Shown here piece after piece: positions 6,201 through 52,000 of a stretch of DNA of 64,000 nt. A model generated the notes under the pieces. That model saw only the letters and a list, made by a program, of their open reading frames with translations. It was not told the origin of the DNA and ran no database searches. Made by a program: the position numbers and the translations under genes. The stretch lies in assembly GCA_964106645.2 (NCBI GenBank), contig OZ067040.1; one strand, 5' to 3'. The stretch's first letter is position 1; every line of letters begins with the position of its first letter. This DNA comes from Podarcis pityusensis (lineage: Eukaryota).

Positions 6201-9200
6201 GAAGGATATGTCAGTTCAATCTGAGGAATGGTCTGAAATAGTCGTCAATGTAAACAATATCATAAAGGTATTACATTTCAAAAATTAAGTAACGGTAAAA
6301 AGTCCACGACCTAGAAAACTGGACGTAATGCACCCAGCTAAATGTTTTAAAGCCCCATTTGATTTCATAGCTTAAATCCTTCCAGTTCCAATAAATTAAA
6401 TTCGAAAAGGGGATCATACATTAATTTAGAGTTTTAATAAGAAGTGGGAGGTTGGACAGTTTTAGATCACAGGCTGCAGTAAAACGAAAATGAAGGACAA
6501 TATTGTTGATTTCCCAAAATCTCTTCCCATCAGATGAAAACAGAAAATTGCAGTAGCAGTAAAATAACTGGTTATTCTCACTACCTGTTGGAAACTACCC
6601 AGAATAAAGGAGGGGAAGATACAGTGTGACTTGGAATCATAATACAGGATACAGAAATGTAAAATGTAATAATACTAAAAAATGATGAGTGCTAATATAT
6701 AGATGAAACTCCCCCAAAATCCTATGTTTGGTAACGTCCTATGTTTTCTGTGTCAATATTCTCTAGGATATGCTGCAAGCTGCTATCCAAGACCGCCAGT
6801 CCAAAGCTGCTTTATATAAAATAAGAGAGCCTCCCGAAATGGAACCAGAATATGTTCCATGGACAGGTGAGAATAGAGAAAATCTTATATGAATGGTTTT
6901 GTAACACAGTATTTCTCTTTCTACATAAAATCCACTGAAGAGTACTTTATTAGCCTTTCAAATTGTTGCCCTTGCTCTTAAATTTCTAACTCAATAGTGC
7001 CATGTTTCATAAATACCTCACTGGTTTTCTTGAACATAAATGTTACATTTTTAGTGTTTAAATATTTCTGTTTATTATATCCTCATCCTGAATGTCTGGG
7101 CTAACATGCTTGCCTGCTTATCATCATTATGGCTTATGTAAGGCCATTACTGCTGTCTGTGCATTCAAACATAAGCATTTATTTACTGGTGCAGATAACA
7201 TTAGGAGGCTAGTAGTGCTGTTAACTTTTAAGATGGTTGCCCTGGAAACTGATGTCAAAACTTACTTGAATTAAATTGTGATTTTTTTTTAATGGCATTT
7301 CGAAATAAATGTGATTTCTCAGCCACAATTTAAATTTGCACCTTGTTTTCTTCCTGGAGAGATCAGACAGGAAAGGACAGATGAGAGCTGAGTTAACCTG
7401 AGGCACAGTCTCTCTCCTACTCGGTACAACACTTGTTCCTGTGAACAAGCCCTAAGCTTATTATAGACTTACATTCCTGCCTGCAATAACTTGAAATCTA
7501 CACTTTCGTAAAAATTGCAAGCAACATCACAGTACAGGTGGCTTTGCAGGGGAAATATCTGATACATTCCCTTGTGCTTTTAAGTTGTTTTGCGCATCAT
7601 AGAATTAAGAGCCTACATGGAAGTTATAACAAATGCTTTCCAATGCATGTGCACATGTATCGTCAAGTAAATCTATGTACCGGATGGCTGTAACATTTTG
7701 CTTGGAAATCCCTTCCATGTAGAATTTTGTAATGCAGGCAGTGACCCTGAGAGACTTTTAGAAACCATGGTTTTAAAGCTGTAAAGGAAAGAAGCCTGTG
7801 TATTAGGTTTTGGTGTAAAGAACAGGATTTTATCCTATTGTTTCAAAAGTTTTCAGATTATTTCATGAGGGGAAAGGTAGGCATGAGGGCATACTTGACA
7901 CTGAGCTCAAGCAGTTGTCTTTTCTTCTCAGCCATAGCCTTGGCTCTGCTAGGATTGTTAATGTGGACGCTTTTCTTTTTCTGCTGTGCAGTGCTGCTGT
8001 TCCACTAAAAGACTTAGGCGGGGGGTTGCTGCTTTGCTATGGAAAGTAGATACGTTTACTTTTTAACGGCCTTTTGTGTCTAACTTCCCCTTGGTATACT
8101 ATCATATGTCATTTTTCAAATTCCATATGCCAAATATAATAATGCCTTAATATTTCATTTTCCGGTCTTCTCAAGCATCCGTTGGTGTGCGAACGACTAT
8201 AATACAGCAACATGAAATCATTCTGAAGAAGGTCTATCCTCAGGTTAATAGTAAGCTTCGTAGCATAGTGACAGAACAGCTGGTGGCACTTCTAGATTGC
8301 TTTCTGGATGGTTACGTTTCTCAGCTTAAATCTGTGGACCGGCCAGAGTACCAAGAACGCTATAACAGTCTGGAAATGGAATACATGCAGAAAAGATCTG
8401 AACTGTTGTCACCACTACGTAAGTGCTGCGGTTATTATACAGGGTGCCATTTAAGTCTCTGCCATGGGTATAGGAAAGCAGGGGAAGAAGGAAATGCTCT
8501 TCTCCTTTCTTTTCTTCTTTTCAATAATGTTTGCCTATTTTTAGCTTTCAACAACATTTCACATTGTGCAGTTTGGTTCTTAGTTTTTCGATTCTAGGCA
8601 ATGTTGAGTTGCTTTTTCTTAAGGGGAAGATAATTTGCAAGGAATTATTAATGAATGAACGAACAAACGAACGACCGAACGTGTGCTTGTATTATTGTCA
8701 GAACCTAATCCTTTGCTTAGGAGTTCCTCCCTGGCACCTTCTCCATGCTAGAGTTTGGCTTGATAGGAATTACAGTCAGGCCCCCTCTGCCCTAACATTA
8801 ACTTTTCCCTTACTCCTCAGTTATAAGGAACTTTGAAGCCCCCCTGCCAACAGCTGTGTCTCCCCAGGTTGTTCCTTGTCTGTCTTATCAGGCTCCACTG
8901 CAGGCAGGAGAAATGGTGTGTTTTGTCTAACTGCAGGCTTGCTTCCCAGCCATTCTCCAGCAGCAAGCTCTGCTTACTGAGGACTTGATCCTGCATCCAT
9001 GCAGGTGGGAAACACAGCGGGCAACACGGTGGTCCCTGGTGGTTCAAAGCTCTTCTGTAGGAGAAAAATTGTATTGTCCTACTACTCCATTATTTGTTGC
9101 TGGGGAGAATGCAGTACCCACCTTCACTCACAGGAACCAAATCCTATTGGTTGAATCAAATTGTCCCCCCACTGACTCTTTGATGTAGCATAGTCTTTCA

Positions 9201-15200: not shown

Positions 15201-18200
15201 CAGCCCAAACAGATGCTTTGCCACTGAGCTCTTCTATAACAGAGTACTTATTTGTGGAACTATGTTCCTACCACAATAGGCTAGGAATGCCGAAGCCTTA
15301 AATGGTTTGTAAATTTGAGCCTATCATATAGCAACCTTATAGGCAGTGTAATCTTTCCATTGTAATATTGGTGGAATGCCTTTCTAAAACCCCGACTCTC
15401 TTCCTTACTATAAAAATGCCTACAGCTGAATGAAGGCATATTTCAGTCAACAGTCACATGAGTTAGAATCCAGGGTGGTCTTCCCACAAGGAGTTCTTAA
15501 CAAGATCAATTACACTGTTTTGGGGTCTAAAAATAATGTTGTCCTTCCATCTTTCATACAATAGTTGTACATATCCCCTGAGAACAGAAGGGCTAATGAA
15601 TATGACTTCAAGAAGGCACTCGATCTGCTGGAGTATATTGATGAGGTATGAAAATGAGTGAGTTTTGGTGATCTCTGAACCAGGATGTTTTTCAGTCTAA
15701 CTGAAGTTCCCTCTCCCATCTGTAAAAAAATAAATAAACATAACCTCTTATTTCTCAGCTACCAAAATACTCAAGTCCCATCTAATACCAACTGCTTGAC
15801 TTCGTGGCCATCTTTAAAAAAAATAATGGAGGGCTAAACCTGTGAAAACATAAAAACTGAAACTGAAGACTATGACTCAGTTTTAGTGATGCCATCAGTC
15901 AAATATCGGGACGCAGGTGGCGCTGTGGCTTAAACCACAGAGCCTAGGACTTGCCAATCAGAAGGTCGGTGGTTCGAATCCCCACAACGGGGTGAGCTCC
16001 TGTGCTCGGTCCCTGCTCCTGCCAACCTAGCAGTTTGAAAGCACATCAAAGTGCAAGTAGATAAATAGGTACGCTCCGGCGGGAAGGTAAACGGCGTTTC
16101 CGTGCACTGCTCTGGTTCGCCAGAAGCAGCTTAGTCATGCTGGCCACATGACCCGGAAGCTGTACGCCGGCTCCCTTCGCCAATAAAGCGAGATGAGCGC
16201 TGCAACCCCAGAGTCGACCACGACTGGGCCCTTTACCTTTACAGTCAAATATCAGTTCATATCAGTATGGGAAATTGATCATTTCCCACCTGCCTTCTTT
16301 TTAGTTATTGATGTCGCTACCCCAACTGGTATCCTTGTCGGGATCTAGATTCATGATATAGCAATGTCCCAGGACCTCTTCTCAGTCCTCCACCTGCCCC
16401 TGTGTTAGGTTTTATTTTCTTAATATTTCTATTAAAATATATCTAACCCATTCTGTATCACTTGATCCCAGCCAAATTGACACTTTCCCTCTCACAAAAA
16501 CTGAACTGCAAACTGTTAAGTGCTCTGGGTCACATTCTGTGGCATCAGATCAGGTCTGCTCATTTCCCTAAGAACAATAATATACTGATCACCTTAAAGG
16601 AGCTTACATGTATGATTACATATCTGTATGGACATTGTGGGTTCATGCAAAACTGAGAACCTCTCTGAAGGTCCCGTTGTTCTTTCTGATCTGTTCTTGT
16701 TTAGAAAGCACATGGCTTTGCATCTTCTTGCTTGCCCTCTTCATCCTGCCACAGTTTTCCCAGTCTGGTATTTCTGTCTGTGGCCAAGAGGAAAAACGTT
16801 TTTTATTCTTGTTCTTAAGAGACTCTTGTGCAAAGTCTCTATATGCTTGGCTATGCTGGAATAAAAGGCATATTTTAATAAATAAAAGGCCTAAATAAAG
16901 TCTTTTTTTATATAGATTCCCCTCCTTTCCCCATAAAGTCATAATCCATTTTCAGACATACTTCAAAAAGCTATTTTCTGGCCCATACCCTTGAAAATTG
17001 TCCCTCTTTCTTACTTCTGGTCATGTTTTTAGCTTGTGAACTATTGAATTTGGACATAATCACAATGCATAATGTGTGTTTCTCTAAAATCTCCAATGCA
17101 ATTTAATATTTCTTTTCTTTCTTTTTTCCTTTGAATGAAGGATGAGGAAGTGGACATAAATGATCTTAAACTTAAAATACTTTGCAAAGCTCTTTTAAGA
17201 GATAGGTAAGCAAGCTATTTATTTGTTTGTTTAAAGCATTTTTGTCCCCACTTTTTGGCTGTAAAGAATGCCGCTCACATAAACTCAGTAACAAAGACAG
17301 TTCCTACATGTAGGCTTACAGTCTAAAAGACATAACACAAAAGGAAAATGTGATGACAGAGGAAGGGGAAAATAAGCAAACTCAGGTCTTAAATTTACAA
17401 CAACTATTTTATAACAATCAAACCAGCTTGAATGGAAACAATCAGGGAGAGGAGAAAAATAGAACTCAAATAGAAGAGCTGATGGAGTGGTCCTTCTTCC
17501 TATCTCTCCCTTTTTTCTGTAGCCATTGTATAAAAACTTGTTAGTACACTTAATATTCTGTTAAAATTTGTAGTTTTCCCAGCTGCTTATACCAGATTGA
17601 ATATTTTCTTTGAAACATGTTTATGTCACACTTCACCATATCAGATTTCAGGGTGTTGTACAGCAGGGGAGGGCAGACCTGAGGCTTGCAGGATCTACTT
17701 TGTGTGTTACTGGAACCCTGAGATCCACCGTGTAAAAGACATGAGCTTAGAATTGAAGAACACATTGTCTCTAAGCAGCTGTTGAGGACAGGGATTTGTT
17801 TTGAGTATTAGAAGTGAGGCTGAGCTCACAATCTTTCCATACAAAAATCTATTCCTAGTTACGAAGTTTTTTCCCCCCCAGGGGGTTATTTTGTTGTGTT
17901 ATTGTTAAACAGGTTGGAGTCAAAAATCCTTGCTGATCTATTGCAGATCACCCAGAGATCTACCAGAAAATTCTGGTCCACCTTCTGCCCACCCCTGGTG
18001 TACAGCATAAAATATTTTTTAAAGTGCAAAAACAAGCTAGCAGATAAAACTTTAAAGTGACTACAATATTATTGGTTAAATCAGTAAATCATAGCAGTGT
18101 GAGTGCCAGGCAAAATTCTTAAGGGAGAGCATTCCACAACCAGGGCATCACTGCAAAGAATGCCGAGACTTGATGATGATCTGATGTCTAATTGAGGAGG

Positions 18201-41528: not shown

Positions 41529-43676
41529 ATATGTTAGTTCATCTGATGCAGCTACTTGGGGCAGAAAAATGTATTGGCCGAACCAAAGAGTCTGTGTACA
41601 TGTTCATGCAAGGCAAGGAAGAAAGCAGGTATGTGCCATTGCTAATGCCTGATGATGTATACTTGTTTGATTCAGTTGCCAGTTTTAGCCCTGGCGGAGT
41701 TATATCAGAAAAGTGTACATTGCTGTTTGAGGTGCCTAACCCATGAAGCTGAAAGGTTTGCACTCTTCCCAGTAACAAAACAACATTTCAGCCACTCCAC
41801 TTGGATTAACAACAGCAAAGGTTGTTTTTATCATCATCAAGCCCCACCTCCAAGATAAATTGGGGTGGTGGCCATAGCTAGAAGGGGGCTGGACACCAGG
41901 TGAAGGAATACAATGGGAACATTTACTGGGAATCTGTCTTCACTGTGAGCTACCATTAGCGCTTTTCTATTTTGGGAATACAGAGTGAGCTTCATAGGGG
42001 GGTGTCCCATACGTGACAGCTGATCAGACAGAGACGCTGAGTGGGGGATGCCATTTAGCATTACAGAGCACTGAGGCCGCAAGCCCAGAAGGGAACAGAT
42101 GTGCCACATTTGTGGTCATCGCTGATGAATGGCTGGATGTTATACAGACCAAAAAGAACCAGACTGCAAGGTTGCCTGTGCTGGAAAAGGGCAGGGATGA
42201 CTTAACTCCAAAGAGTGATCCATGTTCCTTTTAACTGCGGCAGTGCCTGCTTTTTCTGACTCTACACTTCCGAGGGTTTGAAGTTTTGGCTTATGGCAGA
42301 AGACCTTACAGGCCATAGTCACATTAATAAGAAGAGCTTGCTGCATCAGGCCAATGGCCCATCTGGTCCAGCCTTCTTAAATAAATAAGAACCTCTGCTT
42401 TCAAGTTGTACCGGAATGGAGAGGAAAGCAGGTGCTGGTGGAAGGATCCTTGGGTTCAACTGACATCACGGTCACCAGAAAGGAAATGGGTATGGTGATT
42501 AGAATGTTGGAGGACAAGTGGAGTGAAGCCATGAAGCTGGGATTGGGACTGCCCATAAAGGTACCCTAAGGCCCTTTTGCTAGGCCACAACAGTGTGCTA
42601 TGCAATGCCAGAATTATGCTCCAGCGTTCTTTGCGACCATTTGAGTGATCCTCAGTTGCATCTGCTGGACTGCATGCTTCTCCACTGGCACACCTACAAA
42701 CATGGCCACTTGGGGAAGGCTTGTATTGTCCGGCCAGGGCTTGGATGTGATGCTAATTGGGTGTAGTCATTGGACTAGGTTGGGAGACTCGGATTCAGGT
42801 CTGCACTTGGTCATTCAGATATCATACTCAGGTCATTGGCAACAGCCTTTAAAAACAAAAAACAAAAACTTACCAGCTTTTCCACAGACTGGGCAAATCC
42901 TGATTAACTGGTGAAAAAATATATATACTGGCATTTTGATGCAAATAAAGTCCCATAGATGCTGGAGAAAACAGAAGCAGTACTGAACCCACAATACATA
43001 TTCATTTGGAAGGATTCCTAGTAAATAAGCTGTTCTTGATACTGACCAAAAGAGCAATATGATGAAACAACAATAGACTGGGAGAAAATGTTCCATATTG
43101 TTTGAACTCCATTTCAGTGGGGAAATTCAGAGTCAAGGGGCAATTCAGGGACAACAGTAATGCAGAGTGGACTGCTACAGAAACTATGAACCCCACTAAT
43201 ACTTTTATTCCTAGCTGTCATAGTACAAGTGGGAGCTGCAACAATGTTTTGCAGTGTCGAACTCTTCTGTTCAAGGTTCCACCCCCTTCCATTCCATCTC
43301 CTCCCTCCCAGTTTTTAATCCTTCGCATACCCTCCAACAGACCATCAGCATTCTATGCCCATTGAGCATTCTGTCCCAATCATCTGCTTGTGGAAAAGAT
43401 ATCCAAAGTAGATAGAGTAAAAATACAAGGGGAGGGGGCTCCAATTTTCACCAGAGGGGTTGGACACAATTTCAGGGCCTAACAGTTGGTCATCTGCAGA
43501 TGATCCAGACAGAACTCAAGGACTATTCTTAGAACAGCACCGGTTTAGACAGGTGGCACATTATATTTCCTTTGAAATCAATTGAACATTCAAGTTTAAT
43601 AGTACAGTGGATGTGGGTGGCACTGTGGGTTAAACCACAGAGCCTAGGGCTTGCCGATCAGAAGGTCAGTGGTTTG

Positions 43677-45740
43677 GGGGACTTCCGGGGTGGCGCCATC
43701 GGCAATGGTGGACTCCCTCTGAACCGGAGGGACCAGCTCCGCGCGAAACGGGTCTTTTCCGCTGCAGCGAAGCGGGGACCCTTTTAGAAATCACAGGCGG
43801 ATGAAGCCTGTGACCGTGGGACTCGGCGGGTACCCTTAGCGCCCCCCCAACCCGCAAAGGAACCCACTAACGGGCTCCAAAGCGAAGAGGGGGAAGTGGC
43901 GCGGTGCTGTGAGTCAATTGCTTTTTCCGTGGAGCGAAGCCGCATAGCCGTTGCCGGAGAGCGCTGCCTTTTTCCTGGGACAATTTGGCATCTAAAATAA
44001 TCACCCGTGAGTACTTAAACATTGAACAATTGGACTTCAAATAAGAACTGGTGATTAGAAAGGAATTGGACTTAAAAATTTACCTTAATTTGGTACTGAA
44101 ACGGGAAGGTCTAAACAGGAAGTCAGCCTTCCGTTTCCTTGTAGTCAGAAGAAAGCAAAGACAACGTAAACTAGAGCTTAGAAAATCACTTTCAAAGGAT
44201 TGGTTTTCACCATTTAAAATCGTTGAACCCCCCTTCGGTAGCAGGAGAAGAAGGGGGATCTTTTTTTTGGACTGTTTAAACCTGCAGAAGTGAGTTTAAA
44301 GTAAAGTAACTTTCCACCGTCCTGATCCTGGAGCGGGGTGTCAGAGTTGACATTTGAAGCTCATTGACCAGAGACAAATGTTTTTGACAGATAGTTAAAA
44401 GAAGAGTAACATTGTGATTCCACTGTTTCCTTTCGCATTTTAAAGGAACAAATATTGACAAAATATCTTTAAAAAAAAGAAACTTTGTTGCTATTGTCCT
44501 TAAAAGAAAGAACAACCAGAAGTTCTCCCCCTAGAGGGGGACTGTGAAACTGTAACTAATTCTAGGGAGCTTGCAGCTGCCACAGATTACAACCGTGGGA
44601 AAGGACTTGTGACCTTGCAGGACAATGTTTTCAGAAGCACTGTTGGGTGCTTTCTGTAAAATAAATGCCCTATTGGATCAGTTAAGCCAGAAGACGGATT
44701 TGATGACTAATGCGGCCAGAACATTTGAACAGGTAGTGGGAAACTATATGGAGCCCACCCAGGAACTTAAACAGGAGTGTGCCATGACAGAACAGTTGAG
44801 AGAAGAGGATGTTGCTGAATCTTGGGCGCCAGAAAGGGAGGAACCTTTGGCCCTGCAGGAAAATGAGCCTTTGGATCTGACAAATGAACTTGGAAAAAAC
44901 CAGATTTGGAAAGATAAAGTTTGGATTGATTTGGAAATGGGGGGTTGGACTGACCCCCCTATGCAGAGATGTTTGGACTTTCCGAGTCTGGCAATGGGCC
45001 GTCAGATGTTTGGAGCTGTGGGGGCTCTCAATTTTGGAGGGAATTTGAAACATGTCTTAAAATACCACATGGAGTCTAATCTGGACTATGGGAAAGGGGC
45101 TGATTTGTTGAAAAGGGTCAAAAACACGACTAAGCTGGAGTTCCCACGAGTGAAAGGAAAATATGAAGAAGAGCTGCGGAAGGGACATGGAAGAGACTTG
45201 AAGGCCTCGGATATAAGATCACCAGGTTAATGTGCCAGACTAATGGGATAAAAAGGACTGACAAACCCGGGACCAGGAGGAAGGGACGCTGGAAGAAGAT
45301 TGGATTGTTCTTATTTCTTTTTTCTATCATTAGGAATGTTTTATAAAATTGATGAATGTTAGAAAAATGTTGAAATGAAATTACTTGGCTCTTGTAAAAA
45401 TGTTTAAAGAATTAGGTAAAAAGGTAATGGTTATGAGAAGTTGGTAAAAATAAGATTTAAGTTTTAAGCTTTAAGGTTTTTATAAGATAAGATGATAATA
45501 GAGTAAGGTAATGTAATGACAGAATACTATGAATTATGGAAAGGATTTGCTGTGACAACTATTAATCAAGATACAAGAAAAGGGAGGAGGAGGAGGTCAT
45601 AGAAAGAAGGTAATGAAAGTGGAGAATTTGAAAATGATGGTTTTATTTTTTTTTCTTTTTCTTTTTCTGTTTTGTCTTTTTTCTTTGTAATTTTTTAAAA
45701 AAACTCTTTTTTCAATAAATATCATTAAAAAAAAAAAAAA
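43677..45740 (+). mobile_element. ~2.06-kb poly(A)-tailed retroposed element lacking RT (candidate HAL1-like non-autonomous L1 derivative)
   Basis: 16-bp TSD GAAGGTCAGTGGTTTG (43661-43676) / GGAGGTCAGTGGTTTG (45741-45756). CpG-rich 5' end, AATAAA at 45714-45719, A14 tail at 45727-45740, one long ORF. Confidence 0.85.
44625..45230 (+). CDS. 201-aa ORF inside the poly(A) retroelement; possibly a divergent or truncated ORF1-like protein
   Basis: ATG-initiated, uninterrupted, purine-rich sense strand; N-terminal ~60 aa look helical/coiled-coil-like. I recognise no RRM, endonuclease or RT motif. Confidence 0.4.
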   Translation: MFSEALLGAFCKINALLDQLSQKTDLMTNAARTFEQVVGNYMEPTQELKQECAMTEQLREEDVAESWAPEREEPLALQENEPLDLTNELGKNQIWKDKVWIDLEMGGWTDPPMQRCLDFPSLAMGRQMFGAVGALNFGGNLKHVLKYHMESNLDYGKGADLLKRVKNTTKLEFPRVKGKYEEELRKGHGRDLKASDIRSPG

Positions 45741-47489
45741 GGAGGTCAGTGGTTTGAATCCCCACGATGGGGTGCGCTCCTGTTGCTCGGTCCCAGCTCC
45801 TGCCAACCTAGCAGTTCGAAAGCAGGAAGTGCAAGTAGATAAATAGGGACCGCTCCGGCAGTAAGGTAAATGGCGTTTCTATGCGCTACTCTGGTTCGCC
45901 AGAAGCGGCTTTATCATGCTGGCCACTTGACCCGGAAGCTGTACGACGGCTCCCATGGCCAGTAAAGCGAGATGAGTGTCGCAACCCCAGAGTTGTCCGT
46001 GACTGGACCTAATGGTCAGGGGTCCCTTTACCTTTACCTTGGTTTACGAACAGTCCTGTTTACGAACTATCGGTTTACAAACTCCGCAAAACTGGAAGTA
46101 GTGTTCCGGTTAGCAAACTTTACCTCAGTCTATGCATGGAAGCTGGACGGTGGAAGGGCACTGGCGACAGCAGACCTCATTAGGGAAAGCACACCTCAGC
46201 TTAAGAACAAATTTGGTTTAAGAACGGACTTCAGGAACAGATTAAGTTTGTAAACCAAGGTTCCACTGTATTTAAACTGAACTTGGGTGTACCAAACATC
46301 CTTTGAATGCCACCACCCCCATTGCCCTAATAAAGCCAATTTGTTGTCCCTCTTGGAACATATTTCAAATGGGTCATTCAGGAGTCCCTATTTTAGGCCA
46401 ACCATCCTTCCCTTTCTGACGCTGCCAGAGACGCAGCCTACGGCTGACAAAATCACACTGACACATAAATTTGCACGCCTCCCTCCCACGCGACGCAGCA
46501 CACAGCCCAGCTGTTGTCATCTCTTATCCCGGAGGATTGCAGACAGGCAGTGTGGGTAATGACTGCAAGGTAGCACAGGCAAATGTATAATCTTAACATG
46601 GCTAACTGAGCCTTCCAAGAAATGTGTGACTCTGAGAAATATGATCTCTGTGCTTATTTTCTCCTGCAGAATGATTTCACCTAGGAGGTGGGGTGTTTGG
46701 CTCTACGGGTCTAACAAACTGCCATAGTTGGGGAGGGAAAGGAATGGACCTTAACTGTTGTCTCTAAGAGTTCTTTGCCTTCCACTTTTTGCTGTTGCTT
46801 CTTTGTGAGGATTCTTCCAATTACTTTGCACATGATTCAAAACAGAGTGGACTGTGGGGGGTGCTGTAAAACAGAAACAAAAGCAGCCTAGCAGGGGAAA
46901 GGCCTGATCTGAACTTTGCAAGTCTTCCACTTGTAGGGAACAATTTTTAAAAACAAACAAGCAAACAGATAAAGGAGCCTTCAGAAATGTGGGACTCACC
47001 TCCAGCCTGAAGTGGTAACATCCATTGCATCACCTCAGGAGTGCATTATTTCATTCTGTTATTGGTGTTGACCAGGAATTCCACTGGGCCTTCCTGCATA
47101 GAAAGGGCTATAAAAGGCTTTCTAATTGGTCCGGAACTTTGCCTGAGCAACCAAGTCTTCCAGGTTCTGGGCAATTCCTAGGTCCACCTCTAACAGCTAT
47201 CTAGGGCTCATCCTTGACACATACTCAAGCATATTATTCTAATACAAGCTATAATATTACCCTGATGTTATTTTGCCCCAACAAGTCTAGTTATGGATGC
47301 TGTTCAGCTTTAGGAGCATTTAAATAAGTTGTAAAAACCTCATATAATTCAACATTTATTCATAACTGGGTTCCTAGTGGGGAAGGGGGGGGAGTGAAGA
47401 TTTTAGGGAAAGTGCCAAAACATTAGTTGTTATTCAGCTAAAGCTAATCAGAACTATATCCTATTTGAGTTAATGACACAGCTTTGCTG

Positions 47490-50279: not shown

Positions 50280-52000
50280 CAAGGGGCGCAGCATTGGGGG
50301 GGTCACCACAGAAAAGGCTCGTCTCCTCCCCACCGATCGGACTTCCTTAAATGAACCTACATTGAGTGCCCCCTTTAACTCCTCAAAGCGACGCTTTCTC
50401 GGGCCGTGTAACTCTCAAGAAGCTAGATTTCAAAGGTCTGCGCAACGTTAACTCTGAATTTGGTTAAATTGACCGGTTCACCGACAGCTAGTCTCCAGCA
50501 AAGCGTCAGGCACAGGCGAGCAAGCCTTAGGTGGCCCGCACCGTCTGCGATCACGTGCGATGCCCATCTGGGGTACTTTTTTTTATAGCAGCAGCTGCGT
50601 TGGTGGGTGACTAAAACCTGGTGACTAATACCACTGCAGAGACGAAAACCAACAACCGGGCAGGTTCAGAGAAAATCCCGAGTCCACTCCCGCCTCCAGG
50701 GACAAGGACAGCCGCAGCCCGAGGCTTCCTGGCGCTTCTCCCCAGCCTCCCCACCCGCTAAGCTCAAGACGTCCCCTCGGCCTCGCCGGCGGGGGACCTC
50801 CTTCGAATGTTTCCCCGGAGCCTCGAAGGCTCGCTCGTGACGTAGCCGCAGGACGCCCTCCTCCTCGCGTGCCGATTGGCTGAAGCGCGCGGAGGCGGTT
50901 GCAGAACGTCGCTGTTTGTGTTTGAACGTTCCAGCGGGAGGGTGGGGCCAGGAGGGCTCCGTCGGGCAGGCGGCCGATTCGCTGCTTGAGCAGGGCGACC
51001 CTCCGCCCCCCCCCGCTGGACGGCGCGGCGCGATGGTGCCGTCTCGGTGCGTGAAGAGCGAGTACATGAAGCGCTTCAAGGAGCCCAAGTGGGAGGCGTG
51101 CGGCCCCTGCTACCAGGAGCTGCTGCGCTACCGCCTGAGCCGGCGCCTTTTGGAGCAGGCGCACCGGCCCTGGTTTTGGGACGGCTGGGAGCAGGACAGC
51201 AGCCAGAGCGGCGGCGGCAGCGGCGGCTCCCCGTCGCCCCCGGGCACGTCCAGCCCGCCGGGTGGCCAGCAAGGAGAAGCAGCAGCGGCGTCTGGCGAAT
51301 CTGGCCGGGGCGGGGCGGCGGCAGCAGCGGGGGACGCCGACAGATCCTGCCCCGAGGAGCCCTTGCGCGGGTCGGGTATGTTCCTCCGCCGCCGAGGGGA
51401 GAGGAAGAGGACGGCCTGCCGGAATGACCTTGAGCCATTCTCCGGGAAGGCGGGCGGAGGGGGGCGCTGGGAGCCGCGGCTGCAGAGATGAGTCGCTGGG
51501 GAAGGAGGGAGGGAGATGCGGTGGCCGGATGTCCCTGCTCTGCAATGGAGCTGCCGCTGGATGTAAATACGGGGCGGGGGCGCGCGGAGGAGAAAGCGGC
51601 TTTCCTGGATTTTAAATAAATCTTAACAGCTGGGGCTCCGCGTCCGGCTTGGCTCTTGACGCCGCCCTCCCCTCCGCACGCATCGGGAAATGGAGGGTGC
51701 CAGGACCGTGCAGGCGCTTCGGCCTCTTGCCGCCGAGTGGCTTCGCAGCTCCTCCTTACGCGTCTGTTGGGGAACGGGCGAAGGCGGCGCTGCCCTGCCG
51801 CCATCGAGTGGTTGCTGCCAATACTCGGCCCCTCCGGCGCCAACCCGGGTCCTTCCGGAGGCGAGAGATCTCCGGCTGGATCGTCCCTGCCGAGAAGCGC
51901 TTTCGCCCTCGGGCGGCACTTTCCTAGCTTACGAACGAATAGATTGCTACCGGAGCCTCCGCTGACGTAACAGCGGCATTTTGGAAACCCATCTTTGACC
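50280..52000. promoter_or_regulatory. CpG island / CCSAP promoter and first exon
   Basis: Very high GC and CpG; CRE-like TGACGTA 50838-50844 and inverted CCAAT (ATTGG) 50875-50879 upstream of the ATG. Confidence 0.85.

Follow-up and report, generated by a model that had tools for sequence, protein, structure and literature searches.

A retroelement of about 2.06 kb lies within a 64,000-nucleotide stretch of the Podarcis pityusensis genome (GenBank assembly GCA_964106645.2, contig OZ067040.1; hereafter the window, with positions counted from its first base). It carries a poly(A) tail, a target-site duplication (TSD) and an intact open reading frame (ORF), and it has no reverse transcriptase (RT). 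This raises the question of whether it is a solitary retrocopy or a member of a mobile family, and by what machinery it was inserted. An earlier note, made by a model from the letters of the window, had proposed a non-autonomous, protein-coding L1 parasite with its own promoter. We found the element, at 43681–45740, to be full-length, polyadenylated, RT-less and nested in a tRNA-derived short interspersed element (SINE). We consider it probable that lacertid lizards harbour a family of retrotransposons of the non-LTR (long terminal repeat) class, non-autonomous, polyadenylated and mobilised in trans, and that the element is a young, full-length member of it. The parts of the earlier proposal that stood are the lack of RT, the protein-coding character, in that the ORF is kept open, and the status of a multi-copy element; a promoter of its own and L1 as the mobiliser are what we infer.

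Insertion into a tRNA-derived SINE

The element interrupts a SINE whose left half (43561–43676) and right half (45757–45960) are both colinear with an intact copy at 15916–16181; these halves, like every other feature mapped in the window below, lie on the plus strand. The left TSD, AGAAGGTCAGTGGTTT(G) at 43660–43676, and the right TSD, AGGAGGTCAGTGGTTT(G) at 45740–45756, were both read directly and by comparison with the SINE. The two are identical at 16 of 17 bases, matching the 16-bp duplication with one mismatch that had been reported from the window alone. The uninterrupted SINE copy crosses the insertion point, and AGAAGGTC(A/G)GTGGTT(T/C)G is present in it once. Because this intact copy carries the duplicated sequence only once, the insertion and its TSD are genuine and a chance repeat is excluded. 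The two copies of this SINE in the window (15916–16181, and 43561–43676 plus 45741–45960, the latter being the insertion target) are about 88% identical.

Full-length copies at unrelated loci

Three more full-length copies were found in Podarcis lilfordi, at unrelated loci and each with its own duplication and its own poly(A) tail. The copy at L001:3080–5173 is 90.5% identical to the window element, is flanked by AAAAGTATGACTCA(C/A)GCGA and entered a TT|AAAA site. That at L004:816–~2977 is 81% identical, has the duplication GAGATGAG(T/C)G and carries a frameshifted ORF. The third, at L003:4087–~6249, is 67% identical, belongs to subfamily B, is flanked by (AAA)TCTATGGCGTGTGG and entered, at TT|AAAT, a sequence coding for C2H2 zinc fingers; the interrupted coding sequence (pattern 'ECGKSFS.SG.L..H') is visible on both sides of it, at L003:3960–4086 and 6250–6330. 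The window site, TC|AGAAGG, and the site of L004 are poor fits to TT|AAAA. The duplications span 16/17 bases in the window, 19 bp in L001, 14–17 bp in L003 and 10 bp in L004, all within the L1-type range of roughly 7–20 bp.

All four genomic copies examined (window, L001, L003 and L004) have the same first base, the A of ACTTCCGG, and the AATAAA and poly(A) layout of the window copy is repeated in the other three. In L001 the common A follows four extra nucleotides, AAAG; in the window it follows four extra G (43677–43680), which are absent from the SINE and from the three P. lilfordi copies. By this comparison, GGGG and AAAG are junction filler, each private to one copy and outside the element, and the G-run 5′ end that the earlier note had counted as a feature of the element has to be given up. 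As copies at non-orthologous loci share both ends yet have different TSDs, a comparison that the same note had proposed, the window element is, on the strength of these junctions, one copy of a real retrotransposon family and not a lone retrocopy.

The loci of these copies lie behind hits of protein database searches, which also extended the family further. A word-based protein search returned a 201-amino-acid (aa) 'hypothetical predicted protein' of P. lilfordi (83% identity) and one Logan contig, a profile search of 1.84 billion representative proteins gave four more distant relatives, all of them family members, and a profile word search added two; a short-query protein search recovered no extra fragments of the family. 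Three further subfamilies came from Logan contigs, with ORFs of 215 aa (L005/L009), 212 aa (L006/L008) and 196 aa (L007). In a run index, 48–60% of the element's 31-mers occurred in 20 sequencing runs that bear at least seven different organism labels, some of these runs comprising only 117–267 Mb. As a rough estimate, hits in such small runs would imply many copies if the libraries are whole-genome, the library type not being known, and because no run exceeds 60% of the 31-mers, the exact window copy is probably outside the index. Our literature search found no description of such a family in lacertids; Dfam and Repbase lay outside the comparison, and the family may already stand unnamed in some repeat library.

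These copies also bear on a more conventional explanation, namely that a host gene family of rapid evolution repeatedly gave rise to processed retrocopies, the window copy being an ordinary processed pseudogene or retrogene. The layout of the element is indeed that of an mRNA (5′ untranslated region (UTR), ORF, 3′ UTR, AATAAA and poly(A)), and the ETS-type motif with which it begins is one that host promoters in CpG islands typically carry. However, all four genomic copies, down to 67% identity, are themselves retroposed with TSDs, from which it follows that their sources, too, are retrocopies equipped with a promoter of their own. The start base is the same in all four, the transcribed 5′ head described below is the most conserved part, and element sequence is present even in very low-coverage runs. 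Protein searches gave no intron-containing or named cellular homologue, and no annotated cellular homologue of the ORF was found among 5.8 billion and 1.84 billion proteins. The single-copy match to a spliced cellular gene that the earlier note had held out as a possible refutation was accordingly not borne out, and the processed-pseudogene reading was rejected, given that every examined copy is retroposed from the same start and that the protein collections hold no cellular counterpart; we regard a host-gene origin as extremely unlikely.

Anatomy of the element

The element opens with a CpG-rich head of 335 nucleotides (nt; 43681–44015), which runs from the start base A43681 to CCCGTGAGT at its 3′ edge (44005–44013). 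The ETS-type ACTTCCGG occupies 43681–43688 and is followed by YY1-core-like CGCCAT/AATGG(C/T)GG motifs, with CGCCAT at 43694–43699 and AATGGTGG at 43704–43711. The observed/expected CpG ratio of the head is 0.94, against 0.31 for the whole window. An AT-rich leader (44016–44624) completes a 944-nt 5′ UTR that holds only 3 ATG triplets where about 9.5 would be expected and where trinucleotides of the same composition occur 8–19 times. The only long frame of the element follows, an intact ORF of 201 aa at 44625–45230, whose product has a long N-terminal helix, an acidic N-terminal half, a basic C-terminal half and the C-terminal motif RDLKASDIRSPG.

Downstream, a C-poor 3′ UTR (45231–45713) contains a conserved polypurine block, GGGAGGAGGAGGAGG at 45582–45596, and then a T-rich tract of variable length (~45641–45712), so ordered that the T-rich tract, (T/G)CAATAAAT and the tail succeed one another at the 3′ end. 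GC content in this region is 22–31%. The last segment (45714–45740), read directly, consists of AATAAA (45714–45719), a 7-nt spacer and an A14 tail (45727–45740). Most of the first description of the locus thus survives closer reading: the ETS-type and YY1-like motifs, the roughly 300 bp that retain their CpGs, the leader of about 950 nt with its intact ORF, the AT-rich 3′ region and the spacing of AATAAA and tail are all present where it had placed them.

A maintained ORF without a recognisable domain

ORFs of 196–215 aa are open in five subfamilies, with the same start and stop positions, at 24–44% amino-acid identity; pairwise dN/dS (the ratio of non-synonymous to synonymous substitution rates) across subfamilies is 0.23–0.73. 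Because the frame remains open in five subfamilies at such identity, neutral drift cannot explain it. The last twelve residues, RD[LI]RASD[IL]R[SL]PG, are kept while their codons vary synonymously (GAC/GAT, TTG/TTA, AGA/AGG, GCC/GCG, TCG/TCA, CCA/CCG and GGT/GGC), and on account of this motif the ORF is probably translated. Our conclusion from these patterns is that selection on source elements favours a protein which is translated and evolves fast, and that single copies decay afterwards, as in L004 with its frameshift and in L002 with a stop at codon 175.

What this protein might be bears on a second explanation, that of a true 'half-L1' formed by internal deletion of a lacertid L1. The head would then be the L1 5′ UTR, the ORF a diverged remnant of the ORF1p coiled coil (perhaps joined to the terminal part of ORF2) and the 3′ UTR that of L1. 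The layout runs parallel to that of L1, from a CpG-rich, promoter-like head with a YY1 core at about +25, through an ORF that starts in a long helix, to a 3′ UTR with a polypurine block, AATAAA and poly(A), and a distant kinship, in a coiled coil that evolves fast, would slip past domain, structure and profile tests. Those tests were uniformly negative. Across seven ORF family members, Pfam gave no family even at E ≤ 10, Transposase_22 (L1 ORF1p) and other L1 domains included, and neither the ORF nor ten other sense-strand stop-free pieces (36–82 aa) matched an RT, an endonuclease (EN) or any other Pfam family. Solved structures, among them human and mouse L1 ORF1p and ORF2p chains, gave no match with either a single sequence or a profile, and the ESM Atlas held no usable neighbour. 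The absence of RT and of ORF1p motifs, both suspected from the start, is upheld by these searches. The profile search of 1.84 billion proteins, for its part, found family members only, even though gene calls from P. lilfordi and from lizard Logan contigs were included.

Composition points the same way. L1 ORF1p is a basic protein, whereas the family protein is acidic overall, with an isoelectric point (pI) of about 5; its N-terminal half is acidic throughout the family (pI 4.0–5.4) and its C-terminal half basic in most members (pI 8.2–10.4), P0005 (5.1) and P0010 (6.9) being exceptions. AlphaFold2 was confident only for a long N-terminal helix at residues 4–42, where the predicted local distance difference test (pLDDT) score is 64–81. 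No L1 sequence for comparison was found in the window or the fetched loci by motif scans, and the long window ORFs carried no Pfam domain. Descent by internal deletion from a lacertid L1 seems to us conceivable, if doubtful.

A conserved and covarying 5′ head

The head is the best-conserved part of the element, with 67–73% nucleotide identity to subfamilies B and C compared with 50–57% for the ORF, and its invariant blocks include AATGG, GGCGAAG, CAGGCG...GCCTG, GAAGCCGCA, GAGAGCGC and CCCGTGAGT. The common start base, the ETS-type motif at +1, the YY1 core at about +25 and the retained CpGs suggest that the head may serve as an internal, L1-like RNA polymerase II promoter; internal T-runs argue against transcription by RNA polymerase III.

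Folding of the head as RNA gave z = −3.8 for the plus strand and z = −2.0 for its complement. For a covariation test, the structure was predicted from the window sequence alone, and pairs with both partners changed were scored in diverged copies. Such double-sided changes kept pairing in 14 cases and broke it in 3 (7/2 in L003 and 7/1 in L005), whereas six slid-partner controls, pooled, kept 23 pairs and broke 55 (Fisher p = 8e-5 versus the head). In one compensatory hairpin, TCACAGGC-GGATGAA-GCCTGTGA becomes TCCCAGGC...GCCTGGGA in a diverged copy, and in a long-range helix the YY1-like stretch CGGCAATGGC pairs with GCCGTTGCCG about 250 nt downstream, C:G changing to U:A in both diverged subfamilies. 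A model-fitted alignment counted 24 double-change pairs, compared with 7.9 in shuffles and 7–13 in slid controls; as it is fitted to the structure and includes partial antisense self-matches, it is supportive only. By its covariation, then, the head is constrained as RNA too. An Rfam search with the head gave no family match, its sole hit, to a small nucleolar RNA, being at chance level (E = 0.54).

The splice-donor-like CCCGTGAGT is invariant at the 3′ edge of the head and holds the same position in L001, L003, L004 and L005 as in the window; one of the predicted folds has it paired with the 5′-terminal ACTTCCGG. A conserved spliced-leader intron was considered and found unsupported, as an AG acceptor lies just upstream of the ATG in subfamilies A and E only. 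Conservation of GTGAGT may instead reflect pairing or U1 binding.

A covariance model of the head also retrieved a very diverged head in L008, which starts with ACTTCCGG and keeps the GGCGAA loops while its stems are wholly changed and covarying. This second head (L008:826–1043) is nested in sense orientation within a subfamily-D ORF, and it is because of this nesting that the product P0011 is truncated, at 154 aa. Its occurrence there suggests that the structured head could be a module common to other retroposon families.

Evidence against a selected, trans-mobilised coding element

Several observations weigh against our preferred reading, that of a coding family mobilised in trans. Target sites fit TT|AAAA well in only two of four cases, and no more than two or three lineages contribute independently to the covariation of the head. 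The assigned start site, the promoter activity of the head, the translation of the ORF and any use of the conserved GTGAGT in splicing are all putative. Between the window element and L001 or L002, substitutions are even over codon positions (16/22/19); the untranslated head surpasses the ORF in conservation, and constraint appears weak over most of the protein. The pLDDT of the whole model was 34 when 3 sequences were used and 44 when 10 were, with no confident fold past the helix at residues 4–42. Moreover, the ORF-bearing relatives came from a protein search, which over-samples intact ORFs, and both copies discovered without need of a full ORF, L004 and L002, are the broken ones.

Some of these points would suit a functionally non-coding retroposon, for which the structured head and poly(A) tail suffice while the ORF is carried along by chance or is in decay. 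Conservation of the head far above that of the ORF, the even spread of substitutions between close copies, the lack of a confident protein fold and the fact that a diverged head begins another element in L008 all speak in its favour. Yet five lineages at 24–44% identity would not all keep a frame open between the same start and stop if it were free of selection, and the retention of the twelve C-terminal residues through many synonymous changes and a leader poor in upstream ATGs are likewise at odds with a passenger ORF. We therefore think a purely non-coding element improbable. None of the refutations named in advance by the earlier note overturned its reading. As to disrupted ORFs and dN/dS near 1 across copies, dN/dS of 0.23–0.73 and a frame open across subfamilies contradict that prospect, for all that L004 and L002 are disrupted and changes between close copies are even.

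Proposed mechanism

With these reservations, we favour the following cycle for a family mobilised in trans. An internal promoter, situated downstream of the start in the 335-nt CpG-rich head, would direct RNA polymerase II to begin at the A of ACTTCCGG, and the head of the transcript would fold into the multi-helix RNA domain to which conservation and covariation attest. A leader poor in upstream ATGs would let ribosomes scan to the 196–215-aa ORF, whose product probably acts on the element's own RNA or ribonucleoprotein (RNP), as ORF1p does for L1. The transcript would end at the element's own AATAAA and poly(A) tail, and EN and RT acting in trans, most likely those of L1 ORF2p, would insert it by target-primed reverse transcription and so leave TSDs of 10–19 bp.

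Taken together, the copies show retroposition of an RNA that apparently runs from a defined capped end to poly(A), with TSDs of 10–19 bp and no enzyme of its own, in a family that has long maintained its ORF and head structure. That the trans-acting mobiliser is most likely L1 ORF2p is suggested by the dependence on poly(A), the TSD lengths and the two TT|AAA(A/T) sites. A bolder proposal would see here a distinct lineage of long interspersed element (LINE) parasites and not a deleted L1. The structured RNA head of about 330 nt would be essential, would be shared with ORF-less lacertid retroposons and would act both as internal promoter and as an RNA handle capturing L1 ORF2p or ribosomes, and the orphan protein of 200 aa, with its rapid evolution, would represent a new type of RNP or accessory factor that has no kinship with ORF1p. 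We rate this proposal as rather unlikely.

Comparison with known elements

In the account available through PMC5753468 (Smit 1999; Bao & Jurka 2010), HAL1 (half-L1) elements are non-autonomous mammalian L1 derivatives that encode only ORF1p. The lizard family resembles them in being non-autonomous and about 2 kb long, with a 5′ region and a single ORF, no ORF2 (EN/RT), poly(A), L1-type TSDs and lineage-specific subfamilies. It differs in its host, a lizard and not a mammal, and in its protein: HAL1 ORF1p is recognisable, whereas the lizard ORF has no detectable Transposase_22, other ORF1p domain or any known domain. The trait that defines HAL1, homology to ORF1p with the RNA-recognition motif (RRM) and C-terminal domain (CTD) of Transposase_22, is thus not found in the lizard ORF. 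Provisionally, we place the family among L1-dependent retroposons, as a HAL1-like variant whose protein is an orphan and whose head is structured, and not within HAL1 itself.

Likeness to L1 itself extends to a CpG-rich, promoter-like stretch that follows the start and has a YY1-core motif close to the 5′ end, a first ORF that begins with a long helix, a 3′ UTR polypurine block followed by AATAAA and poly(A), TSDs of 10–19 bp, and TT|AAA(A/T) at two of the four lizard target sites. Unlike L1, however, the lizard element has no ORF2, EN or RT and so is not an autonomous LINE; its ORF is 200 aa long, acidic and devoid of RRM or CTD, and its head has a conserved, covarying RNA structure.

With SVA and other RNA polymerase II-transcribed, L1-mobilised composites the family shares kilobase size, its own poly(A) signal, mobilisation in trans and a defined 5′ end in full-length copies. 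SVA, in contrast, is non-coding and built of SINE-R, variable-number tandem repeat (VNTR) and Alu-like pieces, whereas the lizard element has a single selected ORF and no such modules. Alu and other 7SL-type SINEs offer an analogy only, in their conserved structured 5′ RNA domain, L1 dependence and poly(A) end; Alu descends from 7SL and is transcribed by RNA polymerase III into an RNA of 300 nt, whereas the lizard head has no Rfam match and its internal T-runs argue against RNA polymerase III. Nor is the element a SINE by size or origin, at 2.06 kb (versus less than 600 bp) and with no tRNA part, no Rfam match and internal T-runs.

Neighbouring sequence

Elsewhere in the window, a CpG island at 50500–52000 (GC up to 73%) contains long overlapping ORFs on both strands that have no Pfam match. 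It is probably the promoter or first exon of a host gene, and its ORFs look like artefacts of GC richness. Farther out in the P. lilfordi loci we noted an L2-like RT fragment on the minus strand of L003 (742–1395) and a CR1-type RT fragment in L004 (6109–6741). An annotated protein of the latter locus, P0006 (CAI7935470/1, P. lilfordi CANTUW010000783.1), was rejected as a real gene, its 14-exon model being stitched over SINE, retroposon and other repeats and thus an annotation artefact.

Significance

To our knowledge, protein-coding, RT-less L1 parasites are known mainly from mammals, as HAL1, where the protein is ORF1p. The lizard family instead keeps a different, unrecognisable protein open over deeply diverged subfamilies, and conservation is higher in its covarying 5′ RNA domain than in the protein. 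On the practical side, the P. lilfordi annotation already lists its ORFs as 'hypothetical predicted proteins', and annotators of lacertid genomes should class them with transposon genes. If confirmed, the family would offer a tractable system for studying what a non-autonomous element that hijacks LINE machinery needs in RNA structure and in protein.

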